A stretch of DNA of 64,000 bases. It comes from Epiperipatus broadwayi (lineage: Eukaryota; Animalia; Onychophora). This document shows, one piece after another, positions 4,501 through 64,000 of this stretch. The notes below the pieces were generated by a model. It was given only the letters and a program-made list of their open reading frames with translations, had not been told where the DNA came from and searched no databases. The stretch covers positions 26,350,001 to 26,414,000 of the forward strand of contig JAQFVV010000003.1 in NCBI GenBank assembly GCA_028023455.1, read 5' to 3'. The position numbers and the translations under genes were made by a program. The first letter of the stretch is position 1. Each line of letters starts with the position of its first letter.

Positions 4501-4529
4501 ATAATGAAGATAATGATCTTATAAAGAAT

Positions 4530-5260
4530 AAATACTTATATGTTTATAATCAAAAAACATCTTTCTTGAAATAAATCATAAATGATTATATTTTTATATG
4601 CAAATACATTTTTATTAGGATAAATCATAAATGCTTATATATTTTATATACCAAATACATCTGTGTGGATATAAAAAATAAATACTTTAGAATCAAAATC
4701 ATCTTTCTTGAAATAAATCATAAATGATTATATTGTTATATGCAAATACGTTTTTATTAGGATAAATCATAAATGTTTATACATTTTGTATACCAAATAT
4801 GTCTGTGTGGAAATAAAGAATAAATACTCATATTTTTATATGCAAATACGTTTTATTGGGGATAAATCGTAAATACTTAGATGTCTATAATCAAAATGCA
4901 TCTTTAATGAAATAAATCATAAGTGATTATCTTTTTATATGCAAATATGTCTGAATTAAAATAAAGAACAAATATTTATATCTGATATGCAAAATACGTT
5001 TGTATGGAAATAACTCATAAATACTTATATATTTGTATACAGTATACATCTTTATTGGAATAAATCATGAATACTTATATTTTTATATACAAAATATGCA
5101 TTTATTGGAATAACTCATGAATACTTATATTTTAGACACATGTTATGTCTGTATCGAAATAAATCCCAAATACTTATATGTTTATAACCAAAACGTCTTT
5201 AATGGAATAAATCATAAATGATTATATAAACAAAATATGTCTGCACTAGTATAACTCATA
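4530..5260. repeat. Degenerate ~47-bp AT-rich minisatellite with ~142-bp trimeric higher-order unit
   Basis: Recurrent ataaatcataaat(g/a)(a/c)ttata..tttata..caaa..; catctttcttgaaataaatc at 4558 and 4700. Confidence 0.85.
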
Positions 5261-21868: not shown

Positions 21869-22927
21869 CTTAATTTTTTTGTTAGTTATTGATATTTCTC
21901 ATGAAGTCAAATAATGTTCTCACATTGTCGTTAGTATGATCAATTGCTCAGGATATCAAGTGACATTAAGAGATGAGTACAATAGTTCTATTTATTTTGA
22001 TGTGATTTTTTTTTTCTTAATTGTGAATGAATTCAGTAGCTTTTAGCTCTTGAGTTTGATATTCTTGCAATTGCTTTAAACCAACTGGTTTACGATATAC
22101 AGGTTTCCAGTTAGTTATCCATCAATTACATTAATTAAGTCATTTACTATCATTTCTTTTCTTGGTAATCAGATGAGCAATGGTGCATCCAACAAAAGTA
22201 TGACCATATTTACAGTTGATGAATATAAAAATAAATCACAATCCAGAAATCAGGCATAAATATTATCCAGCAGAAGAAATCTTGAAATTTTAATTTTTAA
22301 TATTTTTGACTTCAATTAAGTGCATTTTTATATAGATGTAATTTTTTTAATGAATCCTATGAAAACAAGGTTTATTATGGGATACAGTGTATGGAAAGGT
22401 AAATGTGAATTTGGATTTTTTCATTAAAGTAATGAATTTAATCATGTTGTATTTCCTTACATGCCAAAGAAACTATATATCCCTGTTATTTTTAGATATG
22501 AGTGTGCTAAATTATTCTATTGGTTTTACAATACTTTTGTAAAAAACTCAGTACTACATATTATTAAAGCATAAATCAATAGTTAGGAATTGCATATTAT
22601 AAATGAATTTAAAAGATAATTTAATATGTTCAAAGTTTTTCATAGTTTTTAGATTGCACCATTAATGTTAAATTTTATAAAATAATAATGATTACATTTT
22701 GGAAAAAGTAGAATTATGAAGTATTCATTAATTAATAATAATAATAATGATGATGATGTTAAACCATTAAGTATCACATGATCACTATCTCTTATACTAG
22801 CACATAATTGTTTATAAACAAAGCAAAACTCTCCACACAGTATTGCCACCCTGTGCCAACCAGAGTAATCAATGAATGCCAGAAGGTTTGTGCATAAAAT
22901 CCCTATCTAATGCCTACTCATCCAATA

Positions 22928-22969
22928 TCCCCAGACTAGTTTCTGGCTTGTGGCCATCATCAGTGAGGA
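22928..22969 (-). ncRNA. Type I hammerhead ribozyme A1 (intact core)
   Basis: Minus strand UCCUCA-CUGAUGA-UGGC(CACAA)GCCA-GAAA-C(UA)G-UC^-UGGGGA; stem I extends via AUCCAA/UUGGAU after an internal loop (22917-22983). Confidence 0.9.
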
Positions 22970-23356
22970 GCTTTGGATCTGAGAGCACTGCACCTAGATC
23001 TTAGGATCTAATGCAACTCTCCAGCACCCACCTTTTATCTCTACTTAACTACAAAACTATGAGAATGAAATTGAAAACACAAAAATATTTTCAATCTAAG
23101 ATCAATAGCTTATAAAGTCATATGGGTCTGAACTCAGTTCAGCACCCATACATTTTGGTGTCTTTGACTCTTTAACAACCATAGCCACCACTGTCCTAAG
23201 CATCACATGATCACTATCTCTTATACTAGCACATAATTGTTTATAAACAAAGCAGAACTCTCCATACAGTATTGCCACCCTGTGCTAACCAGAGTAATCA
23301 ATGAATGCCAGAAGGCTTGTGCATAAAATCCCTATCTAATGCCTACTCATCCAATA

Positions 23357-23398
23357 TCCCCAGACTAGTTTCTGGCTTGTAGCCATCGTCAGTGAGGA
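23357..23398 (-). ncRNA. Type I hammerhead ribozyme A2 (intact, CUGACGA)
   Basis: Same fold as A1; N7=C, loop II UACAA. Confidence 0.9.
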
Positions 23399-23808
23399 GC
23401 TTTGGATCTGAGAGCACTGCACCTAGATCTTAGGATCTAATGCAACTCTCTAGCACCCCCCTTTTATCTCTACTTAACTACAAAACTATGAGAATGAAAT
23501 TGAAAACAAAAATATTTTCAATCTAAGCTCAATAGCTTATATAGTCATATGGGTCTGAACTCAGTTCAGCACCCATACATTTTGGTGTCTTTGGCTCTAA
23601 CAACCATAGCCACCACTATCCTATTAGGCAGGATTGGTGTTAAGCCATTAAGCATCACATGATCACTATCTCTTATACTAGCACATAATTGTTTATAAAC
23701 AAAGCAAAACTCTCCATACAGTATTGCCACCCTGTGCCAACCAGAGTAATCAATGAATGCCAGAAGGCTTGTGCATAAAATCCCTATCTAATGCCTACTC
23801 ATCCAATA

Positions 23809-23850
23809 TCCCCAGACTAGTTTCTGGCTTGTGGCCATCATCAGTGAGGA
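23809..23850 (-). ncRNA. Type I hammerhead ribozyme A3 (intact)
   Basis: Same fold as A1, CUGAUGA core. Confidence 0.9.
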
Positions 23851-24263
23851 ACTTTGGATCTGAGAGCACTGCACCTAGATCTTAGGATCTAATGCAACCC
23901 TCCAGCACCCACCTTTTATCTCTACTTAACTACAAAACTATGAGAATGAAATTGAAAACACAAAAATATTTTCAATCTAAGCTCAATAGCTTATATAGTC
24001 ATATGGGTCTGAACTCAGTTCAGCACCCATACATTTTGGTGTCTTTGGCTCTTTTACAACCATAGCCACCACTATCCTATTAGGCAGGATTGGTGTTAAA
24101 CCTTAAGCATCACATGATCACATCTCCTATACTAGCACATTAATTGTTGATAAACAGAGCAAAACTCTCCATACAGTATTGCCACCCTGTGCTAACCAGA
24201 GTAATCAATGGATGCCAGAAGGCTTGTGCATAAAATCCCTATCTAATGCCTACTCATCCAATA

Positions 24264-24305
24264 TCCCCAGACTAGTTTCTGGCTTGTGGCCTTCGTCAGT
24301 GAGGA
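24264..24305 (-). ncRNA. Type I hammerhead ribozyme A4 (CUGACGA; 10.1 U>A)
   Basis: Core intact; base pair at the foot of stem II is an A-A mismatch. Confidence 0.8.
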
Positions 24306-24718
24306 GCTTTGGATCTGAGAGCACTGCATCTAGATCTTAGGATCTAATGCAACCCTCTAGCAACCCCCTTTTATCTCTACTTAACTACAAAACTATGAGA
24401 ATGAAATTGAAAACAAAAAATATTTTCAATCTAAGCTCAATAGCTTATATAGTCATATGGGTCTGAACTCAGTTCAGCACCCATACATTTTGGTGTCTTT
24501 GGCTCTTTTACAACCATAGCCACCACTATCCTATTAGGCAGGATTGGTGTTAAACCATTAAGCATCACATGATCACCATCTCTTATACTAGCACATAATT
24601 GTTTATAAACAAAGCAAAACTCTCCATACAGTATTGCCACCCTGTGCCAACCAGAGTAATCAATGGATGCCAGAAGGCTTGTGCATAAAATCCCTATCTA
24701 ATGCCTACTCATCCAATA

Positions 24719-24760
24719 TCCCCAGACTAGTTTCTGGCTTGTGGCCTTCATCAGTGAGGA
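24719..24760 (-). ncRNA. Type I hammerhead ribozyme A5 (10.1 U>A)
   Basis: CUGAUGA core intact; same stem II variant as A4. Confidence 0.8.
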
Positions 24761-25156
24761 GCTTTGGATCTGAGAGCACTGCATCTAGATCTTAGGATCT
24801 AATGCAACCCTCCAGCACCCACCTTTTATCTCTACTTAACTACAAAACTATGAGAATGAAATTGAAAACACAAAAATATTTTCAATCTAAGCTCAATAGC
24901 TTATATAGTCATATGGGTCTGAACTCAGTTCAGCACCCATACATTTTGGTGTCTTTGGCTCTTTAACAACCATAGCACACCTATTACTGTTAAGCCTAAG
25001 CATCACATGATCACTATCTCTTATACTAGCACATAATTGTTTATAAACAAAGCAGAACTCTCCATACAGTATTGCCACCCTGTGCTAACCAGAGTAATCA
25101 ATGAATGCCAGAAGGCTTGTGCATAAAATCCCTATCTAATGCCTACTCATTCATTA

Positions 25157-25198
25157 TCCCCAGACTAGTTTCTGGCTTGTGGCCATCATCAGTGAGGA
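25157..25198 (-). ncRNA. Type I hammerhead ribozyme A6
   Basis: Core intact; distal stem I extension mutated (tcattat for ccaatat). Confidence 0.8.
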
Positions 25199-25680
25199 AC
25201 TTTGGATCTGAGAGCACTGCACCTAGATCTTAGGATCTAATGCAACTCTCCAGCACCCACCTTTTATCTCTACTTAACTACAAAACTATGAGAATGAAAT
25301 TGAAAACACAAAAATATTCATTGATTACTCTGGTTGGCACAGGGTGGCAATACTGTATGGAGAGTTTTGCTTTGTTTATAAACAATTATGTTCTAGTATA
25401 AGAGATAGTGATCATGTGATGCTTAATGGTTTAACACCAATCCTGTCTAATAGGATAGTGGTGGCTATGGTTGTTAAAGAGCCAAAGACACCAAAATGTA
25501 TGGGTGCTGAACTGAGTTCAGACCCATATGACTATATAAGCTATTGAGCTTAGATTGAAAATATTTTTTGTGTTTTCAATTTCATTCTCATAGTTTTGTA
25601 GTTAAGTAGAGATAAAAGGTGGGTGCTGGAGAGTTGCATTAGATCCCAAGATCTAGGTGCAGTGCTCTCAGATCCAAAGC

Positions 25681-25722
25681 TCCTCACTGACAATGGCCAC
25701 AAGCCAGAAACTAGTCTGGGGA
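25681..25722 (+). ncRNA. Type I hammerhead A7, probably inactive (G8A: CUGACAA)
   Basis: tcctca-ctgacaa-tggccacaagcca-gaaa-ctagtc-tgggga on the plus strand; the C3-G8 pair is broken. Confidence 0.75.
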
Positions 25723-26117
25723 TATTGGATGACTAGGCATTAGATAGAGATTTTATGCACAAGCCTTCTGGCATTGATTGATTATTCTGGTTGGCACAGG
25801 GTGGCAATACTGTATGGAGAGTTTTGCCTTGTTTATAAACAATTATGTGCTAGTATAAGAGATAGTGATCATGTGATGCTTAATGGTTTAACACCAATCC
25901 TGCCTAATACGATAGTGGTGGCTATGGTTGTTAAAGAGCCAAACACACCAAAATGTATGGGTGCTGAACTGAGTTCAGCTATTGAGCTTAGATTGAAAAT
26001 ATTTTTGTGTTTTTAATTTCATTCTCATAGTTTTGTAGTTAAGTAGAGATAAAAGGTGGGTGCTGGAGAGTTACATTAGATCCTAAGATCTAGGTGCAGT
26101 GTTCTCAGATCCAAAGC

Positions 26118-26159
26118 TCCTCACTGACGATTGCCACAAGCCAGAAACTAGTCTGGGGA
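26118..26159 (+). ncRNA. Type I hammerhead A8 (core intact, stem II mismatch)
   Basis: tcctca-ctgacga-ttgccacaagcca-gaaa-ctagtc-tgggga. Confidence 0.75.
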
Positions 26160-26487
26160 TATTGGATGAGTAGGCCTTAGATAGAGATTTTATGCACAAG
26201 CCTTCTGGCATTCATTGATTACTCTGGTTGGCACAGGGTGGCAATACTGTATGGAGAGTTTTGCTTTGTTTATAAATAATGATGATGATAATAATAATAA
26301 TATATTTTTTATTTTATTATTTATATAATTTTATTAAACAAGCAATATACATATATATACAAGAGAATAACTCCAATGCAGAATTTGTGTGAGGAATTAT
26401 TCATAAGAGTCATTATATTATTACAATATATATATAATAAAATATTATCCAGGTATATCCATGTTTAATTTATTAAAACATATGTAT

Positions 26488-39244: not shown

Positions 39245-39705
39245 ATTACAAAGAAATCAAGTCATATATCACATGACCTAATTTTATAACATATTACAAA
39301 TGTTATATATAGAATTCACAAATAAGCTCTTAAAACAAGCTTTGCAGAATATTCCCAATCCCAGACCAGTTTCTGTACTGGCTTCCTCAGTGAGGTGCTA
39401 GGATATTCAAGCATTACATTAAAAGTACCAGGACAAGCCCAGCACTTTAGCTAATAGATAACTATTAAATAGAAAATCTGAAAATTTTAGACATTTATGT
39501 CTTCCAATCCAACTATCTAACTTAAATAGCCATATGGGACTGAACCAAGTTCAGATACACCATATAAATAACTTTAGCAATATAAAATCACCAAAGCCTT
39601 AATAGCAAAAAAATAAAAATACAAAGAAATCAAGTCATATGTCACATGCCCTAATTTAATAAGCTTGTATTACAAATGTTACATATAGAGCTCACAAAAA
39701 AGCTT
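39245..39705 (-). mobile_element. Diverged ~373-bp relative of family A (1.25 units) with a decayed hammerhead
   Basis: Direct repeat acaaagaaatcaagtcat at 39248 and 39621; minus-strand cctca-ctgagga-..-gaaa-ctggtc-tggga at 39355-39398; shares the tatggg-ctgaac-nnn-gttcag-ccata hairpin. Confidence 0.7.
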
Positions 39706-47505: not shown

Positions 47506-47609
47506 TTTTTTTTTTCATGTATCATAGCATCGGCCGGGATGCGAACCCGCTAACTCGGGACAACTGCTTGTAAGGCAGTTGTTCTGAGCTCTCAACCACC
47601 AACGCTTAA
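47506..47609 (-). mobile_element. Young tRNA-Gly(TCC)-derived mini-SINE / retropseudogene with poly(A) and 15-bp TSD
   Basis: Minus strand GCGTTGGTGGT...CTGCCTTACAAGCAGTTG..CGGGTTCG..TCCCGGCC matches the eukaryotic tRNA-Gly-TCC pattern (recalled); A-tail; perfect TSD ctaattaagaatctt at 47491-47505 and 47610-47624. Confidence 0.85.
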
Positions 47610-58780: not shown

Positions 58781-60010
58781 GGGATTTTGGGTCCTGTTTA
58801 TATATGTTTGTGTGTGTTATATTTGGTTAATTTTCACATGAGAAAGTTTATTTATTTTTTTTTTTTTTGCTAATGCTTAATGTTTTATGTTTTTCTATAT
58901 TATTGTATAAGTATATATCATGTAACACATTGGATACATGATTAGAAAATTAGAGTACTAAAGAAAAAAACCTCCAAAGAAGGTCATTTCAAACACCCAG
59001 TAATGTATAAATGAAAATATAGGAAAATATAAAGAAAATTAAAAGCAAATTTTTATCATTTAAAAATTAATTATATATGCATTATATTTTAGATAATCAA
59101 CTATGTTATAAATCTCTCTTCAATCATTAATCCTAGTTTTTTTATTTATTTTGCAAAACAATTACAATTAGCATGACATCATTTCAAAATCATCTTGTTT
59201 TTGTCTTGGCCTATCTTTGTAATCAGGCTTATTAAAGTTTTATTTTTTGTCTGCATTTTCTAAAAATGTATTTATATTGGAAGATGTGATACATTTAGAA
59301 AAATACTAATTCCAAAGTCTATAATAATTTTTTAGACTAAACATTATCCAATAATGAACAATATTTCTGAGTGTAATTTTTATTATACCACTCTTATACA
59401 GATGAGAGATTATCCAATAATGAATAATATTTCTACAGTGTAATTTTCATTGCACCACTCTCATGCAAGATAGGAACTTGTTTCTATTTGCTTTGGAATG
59501 TAATCATAAACATATGACCAAAGACATATGAAAAAGATTATGATTCCCAAGACACACATTTCATACTGAACCAGCACTTATTAGTTGACCCAGACCACAA
59601 CCTCTTACACATATCTTTATCATTTGTTCAGTAAATATATATATAGCAAATTACTGCAGTTTAATTGATGTGTCAAACATGCTGCCCTCACAACTTTGAC
59701 ACAAATCACTTAATGAAAGTATATTAAAACATTTTATTAATCATTCTATGGCTAAAGATTATCCAATAATTAATAATATTTTTGTAATGTAATTTTCACT
59801 ATACCACTCATGCAAGGTTAGGGACTGTTTTTTATCTGCTTTTAACACCTTGTGAAGAGATGTAATTATAAATATATGACCAAAGATGTGTGAAAAAGAT
59901 TTATGATCCCCAAGATACACATTTCATGCTGAACTAAGACCACAATTTCTTATCCATATTTTTATCATTGTTCAGTATATATATGGATAGCAAATTACTA
60001 GTTTAATTGA

Positions 60011-60412
60011 ATACAAGTATAATGTATATACTGAACTTTAAATGTAATTAGAGAGGATTTGAACACAGATTTTCAAGCTCCCTTCAACTATCCACTCCAT
60101 CTTATATAACTGATGTGCATGACTACATGAATATTTTTATTATCAGATTTTCAATAATATGGATGGCTGAAGAGTTGGAGATTGGAGAAGATTGAAGCCT
60201 GTCCATTAAAGTTTGAAGATTTATCTTAAAATAAATAGTACTGATTATATGTATGCATAAGAAATAATGATCTGGACCAATTGATGAATGCTGATTCTAT
60301 ATTGGAGATCATTTATCTTTTTTACATTATGTGGTCATCTGTATCAGTTATATAAGATGGAGTGAATAGCTGAAGGAAGTTTGAGAATCTGTGTTCAAAT
60401 CCCCTCTAACTT
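60011..60412 (+). mobile_element. Nested ~400-bp HHR-bearing insertion with inverted ends and 12-bp TSD
   Basis: tagtttaa(t/c)tga at 59999-60010 and 60413-60424; inverted arms 60047-60123 / 60334-60410; partial HHR at 60272-60306; homologous to 36240-36500. Confidence 0.75.
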
Positions 60413-60757
60413 TAGTTTAACTGATGTGTCAAACATGCTAACTTTACAAGTTTGATACAAATCACTTAATGATGGCATATTAATAATTTTTATTAGTCAT
60501 TCATTAGATTAGAGATTATCCTATAATAAGTAATATTTTTGGAGTGTAATTTTTACTACATCACATCCACACAAAGTAGGGACTGGTTTCTATTCATTTT
60601 TAACACCTTGTGGAGAGATGTAATTATAAACATATTACCAAAGACATGTGATAAAGATCTATAATACCCAAGATGAACATTTCATGTTAAACCAGCACTT
60701 ATCACTTGGTCCAGTCCGCAATTTCTTACACATATCTTTATCATTGCTCAGTATAAT

Positions 60758-60858
60758 TAGGTAGGTAGGTAGGCAGGCAGGCAGGTGGTTGGGCAGGTAG
60801 GTAGGTAGTAGGTATATAGACAGACCGACAGAGATAGAGAGACAGACTGATAGATAGC
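60758..60858. repeat. Compound (TAGG)/(CAGG)/(GACA) microsatellite inside a family B unit
   Basis: Directly visible; other units have a short (TA)n here. Confidence 0.9.
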
Positions 60859-61402
60859 AAATTACTACAGTTTAATTGATGTGTCAAACATGCTGCCCTC
60901 ACAATTTTGACACAAATCACTTGAAATATAAATAATTTTAATTAGTCATTCATTAGTCTGGGGATCCAATTATTTCTGTAATGTAATTTTCACTACACCA
61001 CTCTCATAAGATATGTGTAAAAAATTGTGATCTGGGCCAACTGATAAGTACTGCTGCATGAAATGTCCATCTCGGTGATCATAGATGTTTTAGATCTTTT
61101 TCATATGTCAATTTTTTCACATCTTTGGTCATATATTTATGATTACATTCCTTCACATGGTGTTAAAAGTGGACACAAACTAGTCCTACCTTGTGTGAGA
61201 ATGATATAGTGAAAATTACACTATTCATTATTAGATAATCTCTAGTCTAACGAATGACTAATAGAAATTATTAATATACTTTCATTAAGTAATTTGTGTC
61301 AAAATTGTGAAGGCAGTATGTTTGGCAGATCAATTAAATTGTAGTAATTGTTATGTATATATATTGAACAATGATAATGATATGTGTAAGAGATTGTGGT
61401 CT

Positions 61403-61450
61403 GGGCCAACTGATGAATACTGGTTCAGCATGAAATGTGCATCTTTGGTG
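61403..61450 (+). ncRNA. Type I hammerhead B7 (best preserved family B copy)
   Basis: ccaa-ctgatga-atactg(gtt)cagcat-gaaa-tgtgc-atc-tttgg; one mismatch in stem II, AUC triplet. Confidence 0.7.
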
Positions 61451-63149
61451 TCATTGATCTTTTTCATGTCTTTGATCATATGTTTATGATTACATCCTCC
61501 ACATTCCTATCTTGCACGAGAGTGGTTTAGTGAAAATTTTACAACAGAAATATTATTTATTATGACAATTCCAAGTTTCATTTATCTTCTATCTCTCTTA
61601 GCTTTTAAAGTTTTAAAACTAAGAAAAGTCTATTGTTTGTTGTTGTTTTTTTTCACATTAGTATAGATTTTTTTCTTTTGTATATTGCATTCTCAGTTTT
61701 GAAAACATATTCATTAAAGAATATTGTAATCGCAGCATTGAAGCATTCATAACAAAATGAGATTAAATACTAATAAGAACATTTAGGAGTTTTTATATAT
61801 GTAGGCAAAAATGAAAAAGCTCTAAGTAAAGACCTAATTCTGTCATTTCCAGCACTTGAACTTTATGAAACCCAAGCTTTAAACCATTTGATTATTTTAT
61901 TGAATTAAATAAGTAATAGGTAATTTTTGATGATGATGATGATGATGATCGTATATGACCAGTCCTCATTTAGAAACATCCAATCTGTCATTTAAATCAA
62001 ACCAGCTTTAAATATGTGCATGCACATCCCCAAAAAGAAGAACTATTTATATTGGGATGCTATCTCCCTCTCGATAAGAGAACCAATAAAATTACATGCA
62101 TCTATAAATGTTACAAACCAACTACAGAATTTTATTCAGTAAAAAAATAAAATCCCTCATTATTTGAAAACATGAGATTGAGATATTCAATTACAGTGTA
62201 ACTATTCAATAATAATGATTTATTTATAAGAATAATTATGCACTTTACAGATATATTTGTTTGATATAACCAGCATTTATGTACATGAATAAATCAAGAT
62301 CTGTTTTTGAGGACATATTTTCAGTTGCTAGTTCAAATAATTTAATTATTAAATAACTTATTTTATATATGTATGTTTTCTTTCACATTTAATATATATA
62401 TTAATAACTTTGAATACCTTATGAAGTAAAATCATTTTGGTGAGAATTTTGAGAAGTAATGTTTTCTTTAAATACAAATACTCTTCTGGCAGATGTCAGC
62501 TTACTATTTTAATCATTTTCATTTAACTGATTAAAAATATCATATTTACCTTTGATGTACTTTAAGATAATGTTCTTGGCATAAGGTGAAATAAATAAAA
62601 AATGCTGAGTAAATCAAATGTTATTTTAATAACTAGTCCACCAAATATAAATACCAAATGATATTTAAAAAAAGAACTTGAATATAAAAGATAATTATAT
62701 ATTTTAATACAAATTAATATTGATGTTAGATTTTTGTTTGTTTGTTTGTTTAGAATTTAAAAAATAAACGAAGAAAAGAAACATATGTATGTTCTTGTTT
62801 TTATATGAGTAGAAAAAGAATGTAAATAACAACAGAAAGACCCTCATAGTATAATATTAACCGATCTGCTTGTCATAACCTGGGCTTGAATTCTGGCTGA
62901 AAAAATATTCACATTTGAAATATTTTTTTTAGATTCCAATAAAGTTCAACATTTTTCTTTCAAATAACTAAATTTAGGTGATGCTATAATTTTGTTATTA
63001 TCTATTCTTAACTAGAGAGTGAAACAAGAATGTACTCTTGTCATTTTGAAATTTTATTTTATTTTTTTCCAAAAACTTTGGATACAAAAAAATTACAGAA
63101 AACCTGATTGTCTTAAAACTGCGGAGCTAAGGGTCTCTAATCCTTTGGA

Positions 63150-64000
63150 GAGTTGGTTATTTCAGTTAAAAGTCTATGGAAAATTCAGTCCTGCAAAATT
63201 CACTTTATGTCCAGGATTCCACATGTAGCCATTCGGGGGCTAACATGCGATCTCTGAGGCAAAACCCTTTTAAAAGCTTTATGAAGTATTTCCAATATAT
63301 TTAGATTTGAGTCACTAAAAATGTATTTACATCTGACTAGCCAGATTGCAAAAGAAAAAAACACAGATATTCTGATTTTTGAAAAAATACCTGACTTTAT
63401 GGCATTTTGTATAAATAGGACATCTCTGTGATCATGGGAGACCTTTTTGTTGATGAACGTCCTAACTTGACCAAGAGCTGGACATGTATGGATGATATGG
63501 GTGATGGTTTCATCTGCCAAAGAACCCAGCTGACACTGGGGGTTGAGATTGTTGAAGCCTCTTTGCCACACAAGAAAGTGGTTCATTGGTAGAGAGGAGA
63601 GGTTGCATTTCAGCAAGAAGTCTGAATTTGGGTTCTGGGAACCACCTTTTTTATTTCTTTATTAGTAGTTTATTAGTTAGTCCTATAGCGTTATGCAGTG
63701 GCAGTAGATCTGGATGTTTCAGTTTGTATGTCTCCCAGTAAGTGGTCTTTCTATCTTGAACAGGATTTATCAAATTTGTAGTGGAAGTCACATAGTCCGA
63801 TAGATCAGTTAACCACTTGCTACATGAAGGAGGAGGGGTGTCAGTGGAAGTTACAGGCAGCGCTGATGTCAGGTTGACTTGTTTAAAGCGAGTCAATCTA
63901 ACAACCGCAATTGCCTCTGTAAGTACAATATGGACACTGCGTGGAGACCAAGCCCATTTAGTTCTCTTGGCATATGTGCTTTTCTTATGCTTATGGCAGC
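63150..64000 (-). mobile_element. L1/Tx1-like LINE post-RT region (zf-RVT), continues beyond the window
   Basis: PRELNGLGL; SLPMNHFL...PQCQL.S.ADETITHIIHTCP; FAIWLVRCKYIF (ORF 63200-63616). Confidence 0.85.

Follow-up and report, generated by a model that had tools for sequence, protein, structure and literature searches.

A candidate non-LTR retrozyme of Epiperipatus broadwayi with type I hammerhead ribozymes and a Penelope-style two-armed insertion

The stretch of the Epiperipatus broadwayi genome analysed here (64,000 nucleotides; assembly GCA_028023455.1, contig JAQFVV010000003.1, positions 26,350,001 to 26,414,000 of the forward strand; hereafter the window) carries at positions 22758-26274 a repeat whose units each bear a type I hammerhead ribozyme (HHR). 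We favour, with a probability of about 75%, the reading that this repeat arose by one retrotransposition event, in which a non-autonomous and non-coding animal retrozyme of the kind lacking long terminal repeats (LTRs) was integrated in the manner of Penelope-like elements (PLEs), and that its RNA would be cleaved by the ribozymes and circularized. The repeat family of this element is called family A. Coordinates are window positions unless preceded by an L-number, which designates another locus of the same 5.6 Gb genome.

Sequence reading and BLAST of one unit against the locus divide the repeat into two blocks of opposite orientation (Table 1). Tandem Repeats Finder reports a period of 455 bp with 95% matches at 23197-25318, and the HHR motifs of family A are spaced by 429-455 bp. 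The initial annotation of this DNA had described a simple tandem array, which holds for the tandem units but not for the last 2.1 units (25319-26274), which are inverted. The two arms meet at 25318/25319, where unit position ~132 is fused to ~346 with ~3 nt of letters in common. An exact 15-bp direct repeat, AATAATGATGATGAT, flanks both arms together as a target-site duplication (TSD), indicating that the whole composite, inversion included, arrived as one insertion. The element has a GC content of 38-40%, versus 25-28% in its flanks. It has no LTR, primer-binding site (PBS) or polypurine tract (PPT); its tandem units are short, do not code for protein and contain a single type I HHR apiece. 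Open reading frames (ORFs) in the region are short, none exceeding 80 amino acids, which bears out the non-coding character first proposed. The retrozyme identity put forward at that stage agrees with these features, while the inverted-arm anatomy of Penelope style had no place in it.

Eight matches to the pattern CTGAYGA-N13-GAAAC are present in the 64-kb window, where 0.27 are expected by chance, and all lie within 22939-26148. The eight HHR motifs (minus strand, six; plus strand, two) read in RNA sense AUCCAA-AGC-UCCUCA / CUGAYGA / (U or A)GGC-CACAA-GCCA / GAAA / C-UA-G / UC|UGGGGA-UA-UUGGAU, with predicted cleavage after GUC. Helix I has 6 bp (UCCUCA/UGGGGA) and is followed by a 3x2 internal loop (AGC/UA) and a 6-bp extension (AUCCAA/UUGGAU), as was described earlier. 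Helix III has two pairs and its six letters, ACUAGU, form a palindrome. The 4-bp stem II previously assigned to the motif is found in five of the eight, which have U10.1-A11.1 (UGGC/GCCA); two others have A.A at this position and one a U.C mismatch (TTGC). The claim of a full type I HHR in each unit is likewise valid for the six canonical cores and fails for two motifs, one with G8>A and one with a mismatched helix II. G8 is essential to hammerhead activity and mutational work has established that G8>A is inactivating, so motif 7 is considered broken. The cleavage sites placed by the initial annotation on the plus strand, six in the left arm and two in the inverted arm, are the same as those predicted here (Table 1).

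Table 1. Features of the family A insertion in the window. R1 is the covariance model presented in the text; T1 and T2 are the two end points of the arms.
Feature	Coordinates	Strand	Description
Left TSD copy	22743-22757		AATAATGATGATGAT, exact 15-bp flanking repeat, in an (AAT)n(GAT)n microsatellite
Right TSD copy	26275-26289		AATAATGATGATGAT, exact 15-bp flanking repeat
Tail, ~55 nt	22758-22812	-	Overrun of the left arm (T2, unit ~468) beyond the end point of the right arm (T1, unit ~410); end mapping
Left arm, 5.6 units	22758-25318	-	RNA-sense 3' end at the outer left boundary; BLAST and Tandem Repeats Finder
Right arm, 2.1 inverted units	25319-26274	+	RNA-sense 3' end at the outer right boundary (T1)
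Central hairpin, example	23120-23150	-	UAUGGGUGCUGAACUGAGUUCAGACCCAUA, once per unit; comparison of families A and B
HHR motif 1	22917-22981	-	CUGAUGA, UGGC/GCCA; predicted cut 22934/22933; 90.8 bits with model R1
HHR motif 2	23346-23410	-	CUGACGA, UGGC/GCCA, loop UACAA; predicted cut 23363/23362
HHR motif 3	23798-23862	-	CUGAUGA, UGGC/GCCA; predicted cut 23815/23814
HHR motif 4	24253-24317	-	CUGACGA, AGGC/GCCA (A.A at 10.1-11.1); predicted cut 24270/24269
HHR motif 5	24708-24772	-	CUGAUGA, AGGC/GCCA; predicted cut 24725/24724
HHR motif 6	25146-25210	-	CUGAUGA, UGGC/GCCA; predicted cut 25163/25162
HHR motif 7	25669-25733	+	Broken core CUGACAA at 25687, G8>A by CpG decay; site would follow 25716
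HHR motif 8	26106-26170	+	CUGACGA; helix II weakened at 26124 (UUGC/GCCA, U.C mismatch); predicted site after 26153

Family A is dispersed in the genome. The copy count that had been named as a check of the initial annotation gives at least 2,947 first-look candidates for the unit on many contigs, and the scored copies are 94-96% identical to it. An older subfamily of family A is represented by 9,043 first-look candidates, its own copies being 86-89% identical. Exact flanking direct repeats of 11-17 bp are found at 18 of the 23 loci with both ends in the fetched DNA, versus 3 of 506 mismatched left/right pairs that reach 11 bp in a control. All two-armed loci have the arrangement '<..>', their arms reading outward in RNA sense, so that both outer ends are RNA-sense 3' ends. 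These ends fall at two places of the unit, T1 at 400-412 (...GCUUUGUUUAUA) and T2 at 446-468 (...GAUGCUUAAUGGUUUAAC), and every one of the 18 two-armed loci analysed combines one T1 end with one T2 end. A tail of 36-59 nt (median 47.5) is present on one arm only in the same 18 loci. Free choice at each end would produce mixed ends at all 18 loci with a probability of ~4e-6. In the window element the left arm ends at T2 (22758) and the right arm at T1 (26274).

The distances of the family A ends from the cleavage site are 111-123 nt for T1 and 157-179 nt for T2. Neither end of the window insertion coincides with a ribozyme cleavage site, and its arms run through several uncut sites. Inner joints vary among loci, with a non-random distribution of the inner 5' ends: seven of ~25 loci have them at unit 344-351 (including the right arm of the window element, at 346) and four at 366-367. 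These clusters may correspond to a pause of reverse transcription or to a preferred joining point. Microhomology is found between the target and the element ends. Among 46 monomers three are 499-512 nt long; one irregular monomer has a tandem duplication of the T1-T2 segment, another a duplication of ~57 nt just upstream of T1, and in one further unit a short stretch is duplicated exactly at T2.

This anatomy matches the published signature of PLE insertions, which comprises partial tandems, an inverted 5'-truncated copy, a tail of 30-40 bp at one end and a bias for microsatellites, and which its authors explicitly contrasted with insertions of long interspersed nuclear elements (LINEs) (Craig et al. 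2021, PMC8557442). Family A insertions have in common with PLEs the partial tandem with an inverted 5'-truncated copy, the tail at one end and the microsatellite or AT-rich target; unlike PLEs, they have no ORF, a tail of 36-59 nt and no sequence match to the PLEs sampled. Autonomous PLEs coexist with family A in this genome, in which intact Penelope ORFs are abundant: 10,240 first-look GIY-YIG candidates were obtained, many of them arranged in pairs, inverted or tandem, at distances of a few kb, and the open frames reach 901 amino acids. The tandem PLEs of L053 (2300-8137), L055 and L056 have units of 3,135 bp with intact ORFs of 871-901 amino acids, extremely rich in lysine, isoleucine and asparagine (K/I/N), separated by a spacer of ~432 bp. 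Their domain assignment comes from a GIY-YIG score of 39 bits in the genome search, from visible YVDD and GIY-YIG motifs and from Atlas neighbours, the nearest clusters bearing RVT_1, HTH_animal and GIY-YIG. Pfam hmmscan of the three intact ORFs as whole proteins gave no match, probably because of their extreme K/I/N content. Regular-expression scans for canonical hammerheads behind four PLE ORFs found none.

A sister family, B, has units of ~425 nt (L031-L042, for example L038:428-2541 and L040:1391-2411) with the HHR UCCUCA CUGAAGA GACC-CAUA-GGUC GAAAC-CG-GUC UGGGGA. Its stem I is identical to that of family A (UCCUCA/UGGGGA) and is followed by an internal loop and a 5-bp extension (GUCCC/GGGAC), helix II (GACC/GGUC) differs from that of family A and is fully paired, and helix III forms the palindrome ACCGGU. 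Outside the HHR the two families align solely at the central hairpin UAUGGGUGCUGAACUGAGUUCAGACCCAUA. Family B insertions are also two-armed ('<..>') with a one-sided tail and TSDs of 12-17 bp, and their ends lie ~118-123 and ~174-183 nt after GUC, at the same distances as in family A. In copies L036, L038 and L039 of this family the 5' half of the ribozyme is partially duplicated within the copy.

Comparison across families provides evidence that the hammerhead fold is under selection. A direct parse with regular expressions identified the helix II variants AGGC/GCCA, UGGC/GCCA, AAGC/GCUA and GACC/GGUC together with a constant stem I UCCUCA/UGGGGA; AAGC/GCUA, which belongs to the older family A subfamily, is a G-C to A-U change on both sides of the helix. 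Position 10.1-11.1 is A.A in the dominant genomic form (55 of 111 intact motifs sampled) and U-A in the subfamily of the window array. The A.A closing can alternatively be read as G-C with an additional A on either side. In all families seen loop 3 is self-complementary (UA, CG, CAUG), with calculated self-duplex energies of -4.8 kcal/mol for ACUAGU and -8.3 kcal/mol for ACCGGU; this recurrence fits the double-hammerhead model of newt and PLE motifs (PMC4209133). A covariance model, R1, built from 27 motifs and searched against the fetched DNA retrieved 143 motifs of several families of this genome. Standard pairs occupy 86.5% of the cells of their alignment, versus 82.0+-0.4 in shuffles (0 of 500 reach the observed value) and 28-54% when the partners are slid, and 11 of 18 pairs are changed on both sides (reached by 2 of 500 shuffles). 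This alignment was fitted to the model, so that its counts lean towards it, and helix II of family B is mis-registered; the direct parse, made independently of the model, agrees with it and is the cleaner evidence.

The 455-nt monomer delimited by cuts at the GUC sites has a predicted folding energy of -162.2 kcal/mol, versus -122.2+-6.7 for shuffles (z -5.96); the antisense monomer gives -115.7 kcal/mol (z -4.58). In the minimum-energy fold the 5' end of the monomer is base-paired to the strand of stem I and its extension; helix II forms as well. The predicted global fold, which retains helices I and II in agreement with the folding check proposed earlier, is therefore compatible with the ribozyme fold. 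The same compatibility between monomer fold and HHR is reported for most metazoan retrozymes (PMC7229834). Transcription by RNA polymerase III from a type 2 promoter, for which the surroundings of the conserved hairpin were inspected by eye, was rejected because the HHR-sense strand has runs of U4-U5 at five places per unit, which would terminate this polymerase, and because family B does not conserve the A-box-like part. A scan for bacterial promoters and terminators, irrelevant to this genome, found fewer sites than in shuffles.

Units within the array differ by 2-7% (9-23 substitutions), and the changes private to each unit amount to ~0.4-2.2%. These private changes and the intact TSD (15/15) indicate that the insertion is fairly young, not brand new; the youth attributed to the array from the start is correct in relative terms only. 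At 7 sites units 2 and 4 carry one allele and units 1, 3 and 5 another. Many of the subset-specific alleles are present also in other loci, indicating that the units were already heterogeneous at insertion. This mixed composition is compatible with a multimeric transcript of another array that had stayed uncut, with a dimeric circle, or with a switch of template from one RNA to another.

A possible cycle can be drawn from these observations. Arrays would be transcribed in the HHR sense, and neighbouring motifs could pair through the palindromic helix III to form double hammerheads that would cut after GUC. A host RNA ligase could close the monomers into highly self-paired circles. Uncut multimers, circles or successive RNAs would then be copied by a reverse transcriptase, putatively that of PLEs. 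The loci themselves show the DNA anatomy of integration: synthesis of cDNA was primed by both 3'-OH ends of a staggered target cut of 11-17 bp, at two fixed places of the RNA ~47 nt apart (T1 and T2), and the cDNAs ran inward and were joined mid-element, which left a pair of divergent arms, a tail on one side only and a duplicated target. Variable TSDs and outward 3' ends are what is expected from target-primed reverse transcription on both nicked strands. We tentatively view these very abundant, short and ORF-free elements as an unusually clear record of how PLEs integrate, which would fit either priming of the two target strands coupled on a single template or a series of jumps from one terminally redundant RNA to the next; this refinement is possible rather than probable. 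No model yet explains the fixed pairing of T1 and T2 in two families, the mixed sources of the units and the duplications at T1-T2 (one of 46 unit junctions) and at T2 (another).

Several observations weigh against a retrozyme mobilized by PLEs. Family A has no match to Rfam Hammerhead_1 (RF00163; gathering threshold 34 bits) at the gathering score, nor at E<=10 on a 4-kb or 91-nt slice; the Infernal check that the initial annotation had proposed is thus negative for the window family. The miss is real, since the same pipeline scores the sister family B motif (32.1 bits); in a genome-wide RF00163 search family B is found at 30-40 bits, with five family-B-type motifs at 34-40 bits. In our view it results from A.A or U-A taking the place of the G10.1-C11.1 pair that canonically closes helix II. 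The catalytic competence of family A is uncertain because the dominant variant has A.A in place of this canonical pair. Position 7, a C in the ancestral form, is part of a CpG that has become TG in 8 sampled copies, which is harmless, and CA in 6, which kills G8; since this core CpG decays both ways, individual genomic copies drift neutrally, without selection. Fourteen sequencing runs from eight organisms and five studies contain 6-38% of the sampled words of the array, and the four runs that were mapped have thousands of short contigs on the repeat and none on its flanks. These contigs are of unknown kind, with no record as RNA and no information on ends, strand or circles, and indicate only the abundance of the family in several related samples. 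The subset-specific variants shared among units speak against a rolling-circle copy of a single monomeric circle as the source of this array. BLAST of the family A unit against 14 PLE loci, a tiny sample of the more than 10,000 candidates, revealed no similarity, just an unrelated small fragment near one locus.

The HHR could be a catalytically dead or weak relic, in which case the family would spread as an ordinary short retroelement or satellite without cleavage or circles. The silence of Rfam Hammerhead_1 would fit such a relic, as would the dominant A.A variant with just three G-C pairs in helix II, the low in vitro activity of PLE-type hammerheads (PMC4209133), and the position of T1 and T2 111-179 nt away from the cleavage site in arms that contain uncut sites. 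We nevertheless consider this unlikely: the core boxes, stem I, helix II pairing and palindromic helix III have been kept across families diverged beyond alignment, families A and B have solely the HHR and one hairpin in common, and the sister family HHR attains the Rfam gathering score. Mobilization by a LINE, L1-like or other, would make the inversion an ordinary product of twin priming. Variable TSDs and 5' inversions are reportedly features of L1 insertions, made by target-primed reverse transcription, and the 11-17 bp TSDs and the inversions of family A resemble them; microhomology between target and element ends is found as well. The insertions, however, have no poly(A) or microsatellite tail at their 3' end, are essentially all two-armed where a minority would be expected, and always have one T1 and one T2 end (18/18), while type I HHRs are a hallmark of PLEs (PMC4209133); a LINE is therefore an improbable mobilizer. 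Arms that are inverted repeats of tandem units also recall a foldback-type or other DNA transposon with long inverted arms made of tandem subrepeats. This is very hard to reconcile with TSDs that vary from 11 to 17 bp, unequal arms, variable inner joints, outer ends that are not inverted copies of each other (T1 versus T2) and the lack of a transposase, and we give it almost no weight.

The preferred reading, a non-LTR retrozyme with PLE-style integration, agrees with what is known of related elements. Family A has the structural features that define metazoan non-LTR retrozymes, as established with coral, mussel and axolotl (Cervera & de la Pena 2020, PMC7229834). As in those elements, the tandem units do not code for protein and contain one type I HHR apiece, the GC content is under 50% and the TSDs exceed 4 bp; LTR, PBS and PPT are lacking, the monomer is highly self-paired but leaves the HHR unblocked, and PLEs are present in the same genome. 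Family A is a new sequence family of a known kind, so that the novelty claimed in the initial annotation concerns the sequence and not the kind of element. The closing of helix II by A.A or U-A sets it apart from those retrozymes. Its units of 429-455 nt exceed the ~170-400 nt of the same study and fall inside the consensus range of 51-972 bp given for vertebrate retrozymes (Li, Clavereau & Pollet 2026, 10.64898/2026.07.22.740005); the initial annotation had placed this size near the upper end of the range. The latter authors present animal retrozymes as non-autonomous derivatives of PLEs. Our conclusion is the same; theirs comes from co-occurrence and similarity to pseudo-LTRs (pLTRs), ours from insertion anatomy, with no pLTR similarity found among the 14 PLE loci compared. 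The divergent anatomy with two arms and one tail is not described in the texts of PMC7229834 or 10.64898/2026.07.22.740005 and is a modest addition to the knowledge of retrozymes.

The ribozyme itself shares with PLE hammerheads the type I topology, a palindromic 15.2-16.2/loop 3 segment and an extra nucleotide after A9 (Cervera & de la Pena 2014, PMC4209133); it differs from the 'minimal' PLE motif in that helix I has the canonical 6 bp and helix III has 2 bp. The double hammerheads of newt satellite 2 and of the axolotl retrozyme (Forster et al. 1988, cited in PMC4209133) likewise combine an unstable helix III and a palindromic loop, which by analogy would imply cleavage as a dimer of adjacent motifs. 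Family A has no evident sequence relation to these amphibian elements and its host is very AT-rich (flanks of 25-28% GC). Plant LTR retrozymes (PMC4918200) are likewise non-autonomous, bear HHRs and propagate via circular RNA, as family A would; their type III HHRs located in LTRs, PBS and PPT, 4-bp TSDs and Gypsy helpers have no equivalent in family A.

Family A is a well-resolved retrozyme family from a large and very AT-rich animal genome. Such elements are under-annotated, since Rfam gives no match and ORF finders see nothing. The A.A or U-A closing of helix II widens the natural sequence space in which hammerhead activity can be looked for. The strict anatomy, with outward 3' ends, T1 combined with T2 and TSDs of 11-17 bp, lends structural support, independent of sequence similarity, to the idea that animal retrozymes ride on PLEs, and offers a compact system for studying PLE integration; the picture of what retrozymes are is unchanged. 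If the elements are indeed such a record of PLE integration, it would become directly testable how the PLE tail and pseudo-LTRs arise.

Further hammerhead families, seen in the flanks, also keep their pairing, with stems ACCUCA/UGGGGU and UCUCCA/UGGAGA and the palindrome ACCAUGGU. The second of these stems belongs to a hammerhead-like family at L010:378-442 and L027:3171-3237, in which helix II reads GGGC/GCCC and helix III is a palindrome of 8 nt, ACCAUGGU; the core CUGACGU of these motifs has U at position 9 instead of the conserved A, so that they may be inactive or non-canonical. A second array, older and more decayed, occupies 59336-61570 of the window and is also divergent, its left part lying on the minus and its right part on the plus strand. 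Its motif (...GGCCAA CUGAUGA AUACUG-GUU-CAGCAU GAAA UG-UG-CA UC|UUUGGU) belongs to a different hammerhead family, gives no match with model R1, and resembles one near a PLE GIY-YIG locus (L049:1169-1200). A lone hammerhead at 39348-39407 (minus strand) scores 41.5 bits with R1 and has stem I ACCUCA/UGGGAU and a decayed helix II. It adjoins ~270 bp (39412-39677) that are 72% identical to family B, and the whole looks like an old degraded retrozyme copy.

The sole match in the window at Rfam gathering score is to tRNA (39.2 bits; 47526-47605, minus strand). Its variable region contains a long additional segment, and the sequence could be either a tRNA gene or a repeat derived from a tRNA. Weak Rfam matches to RefA5 (at the central hairpin), SR1, IRES_HepA and small nucleolar RNAs are attributed to chance. 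An AT-rich tandem repeat at 4521-5227 (period 99/142 bp; ~5-7 copies; 69-74% matches) appears unrelated to retrozymes. A 138-amino-acid ORF at 63200-63616 (minus strand) has a weak zf-RVT match of 17.5 bits, below the cut-off, and may be the remnant of a reverse-transcriptase element.

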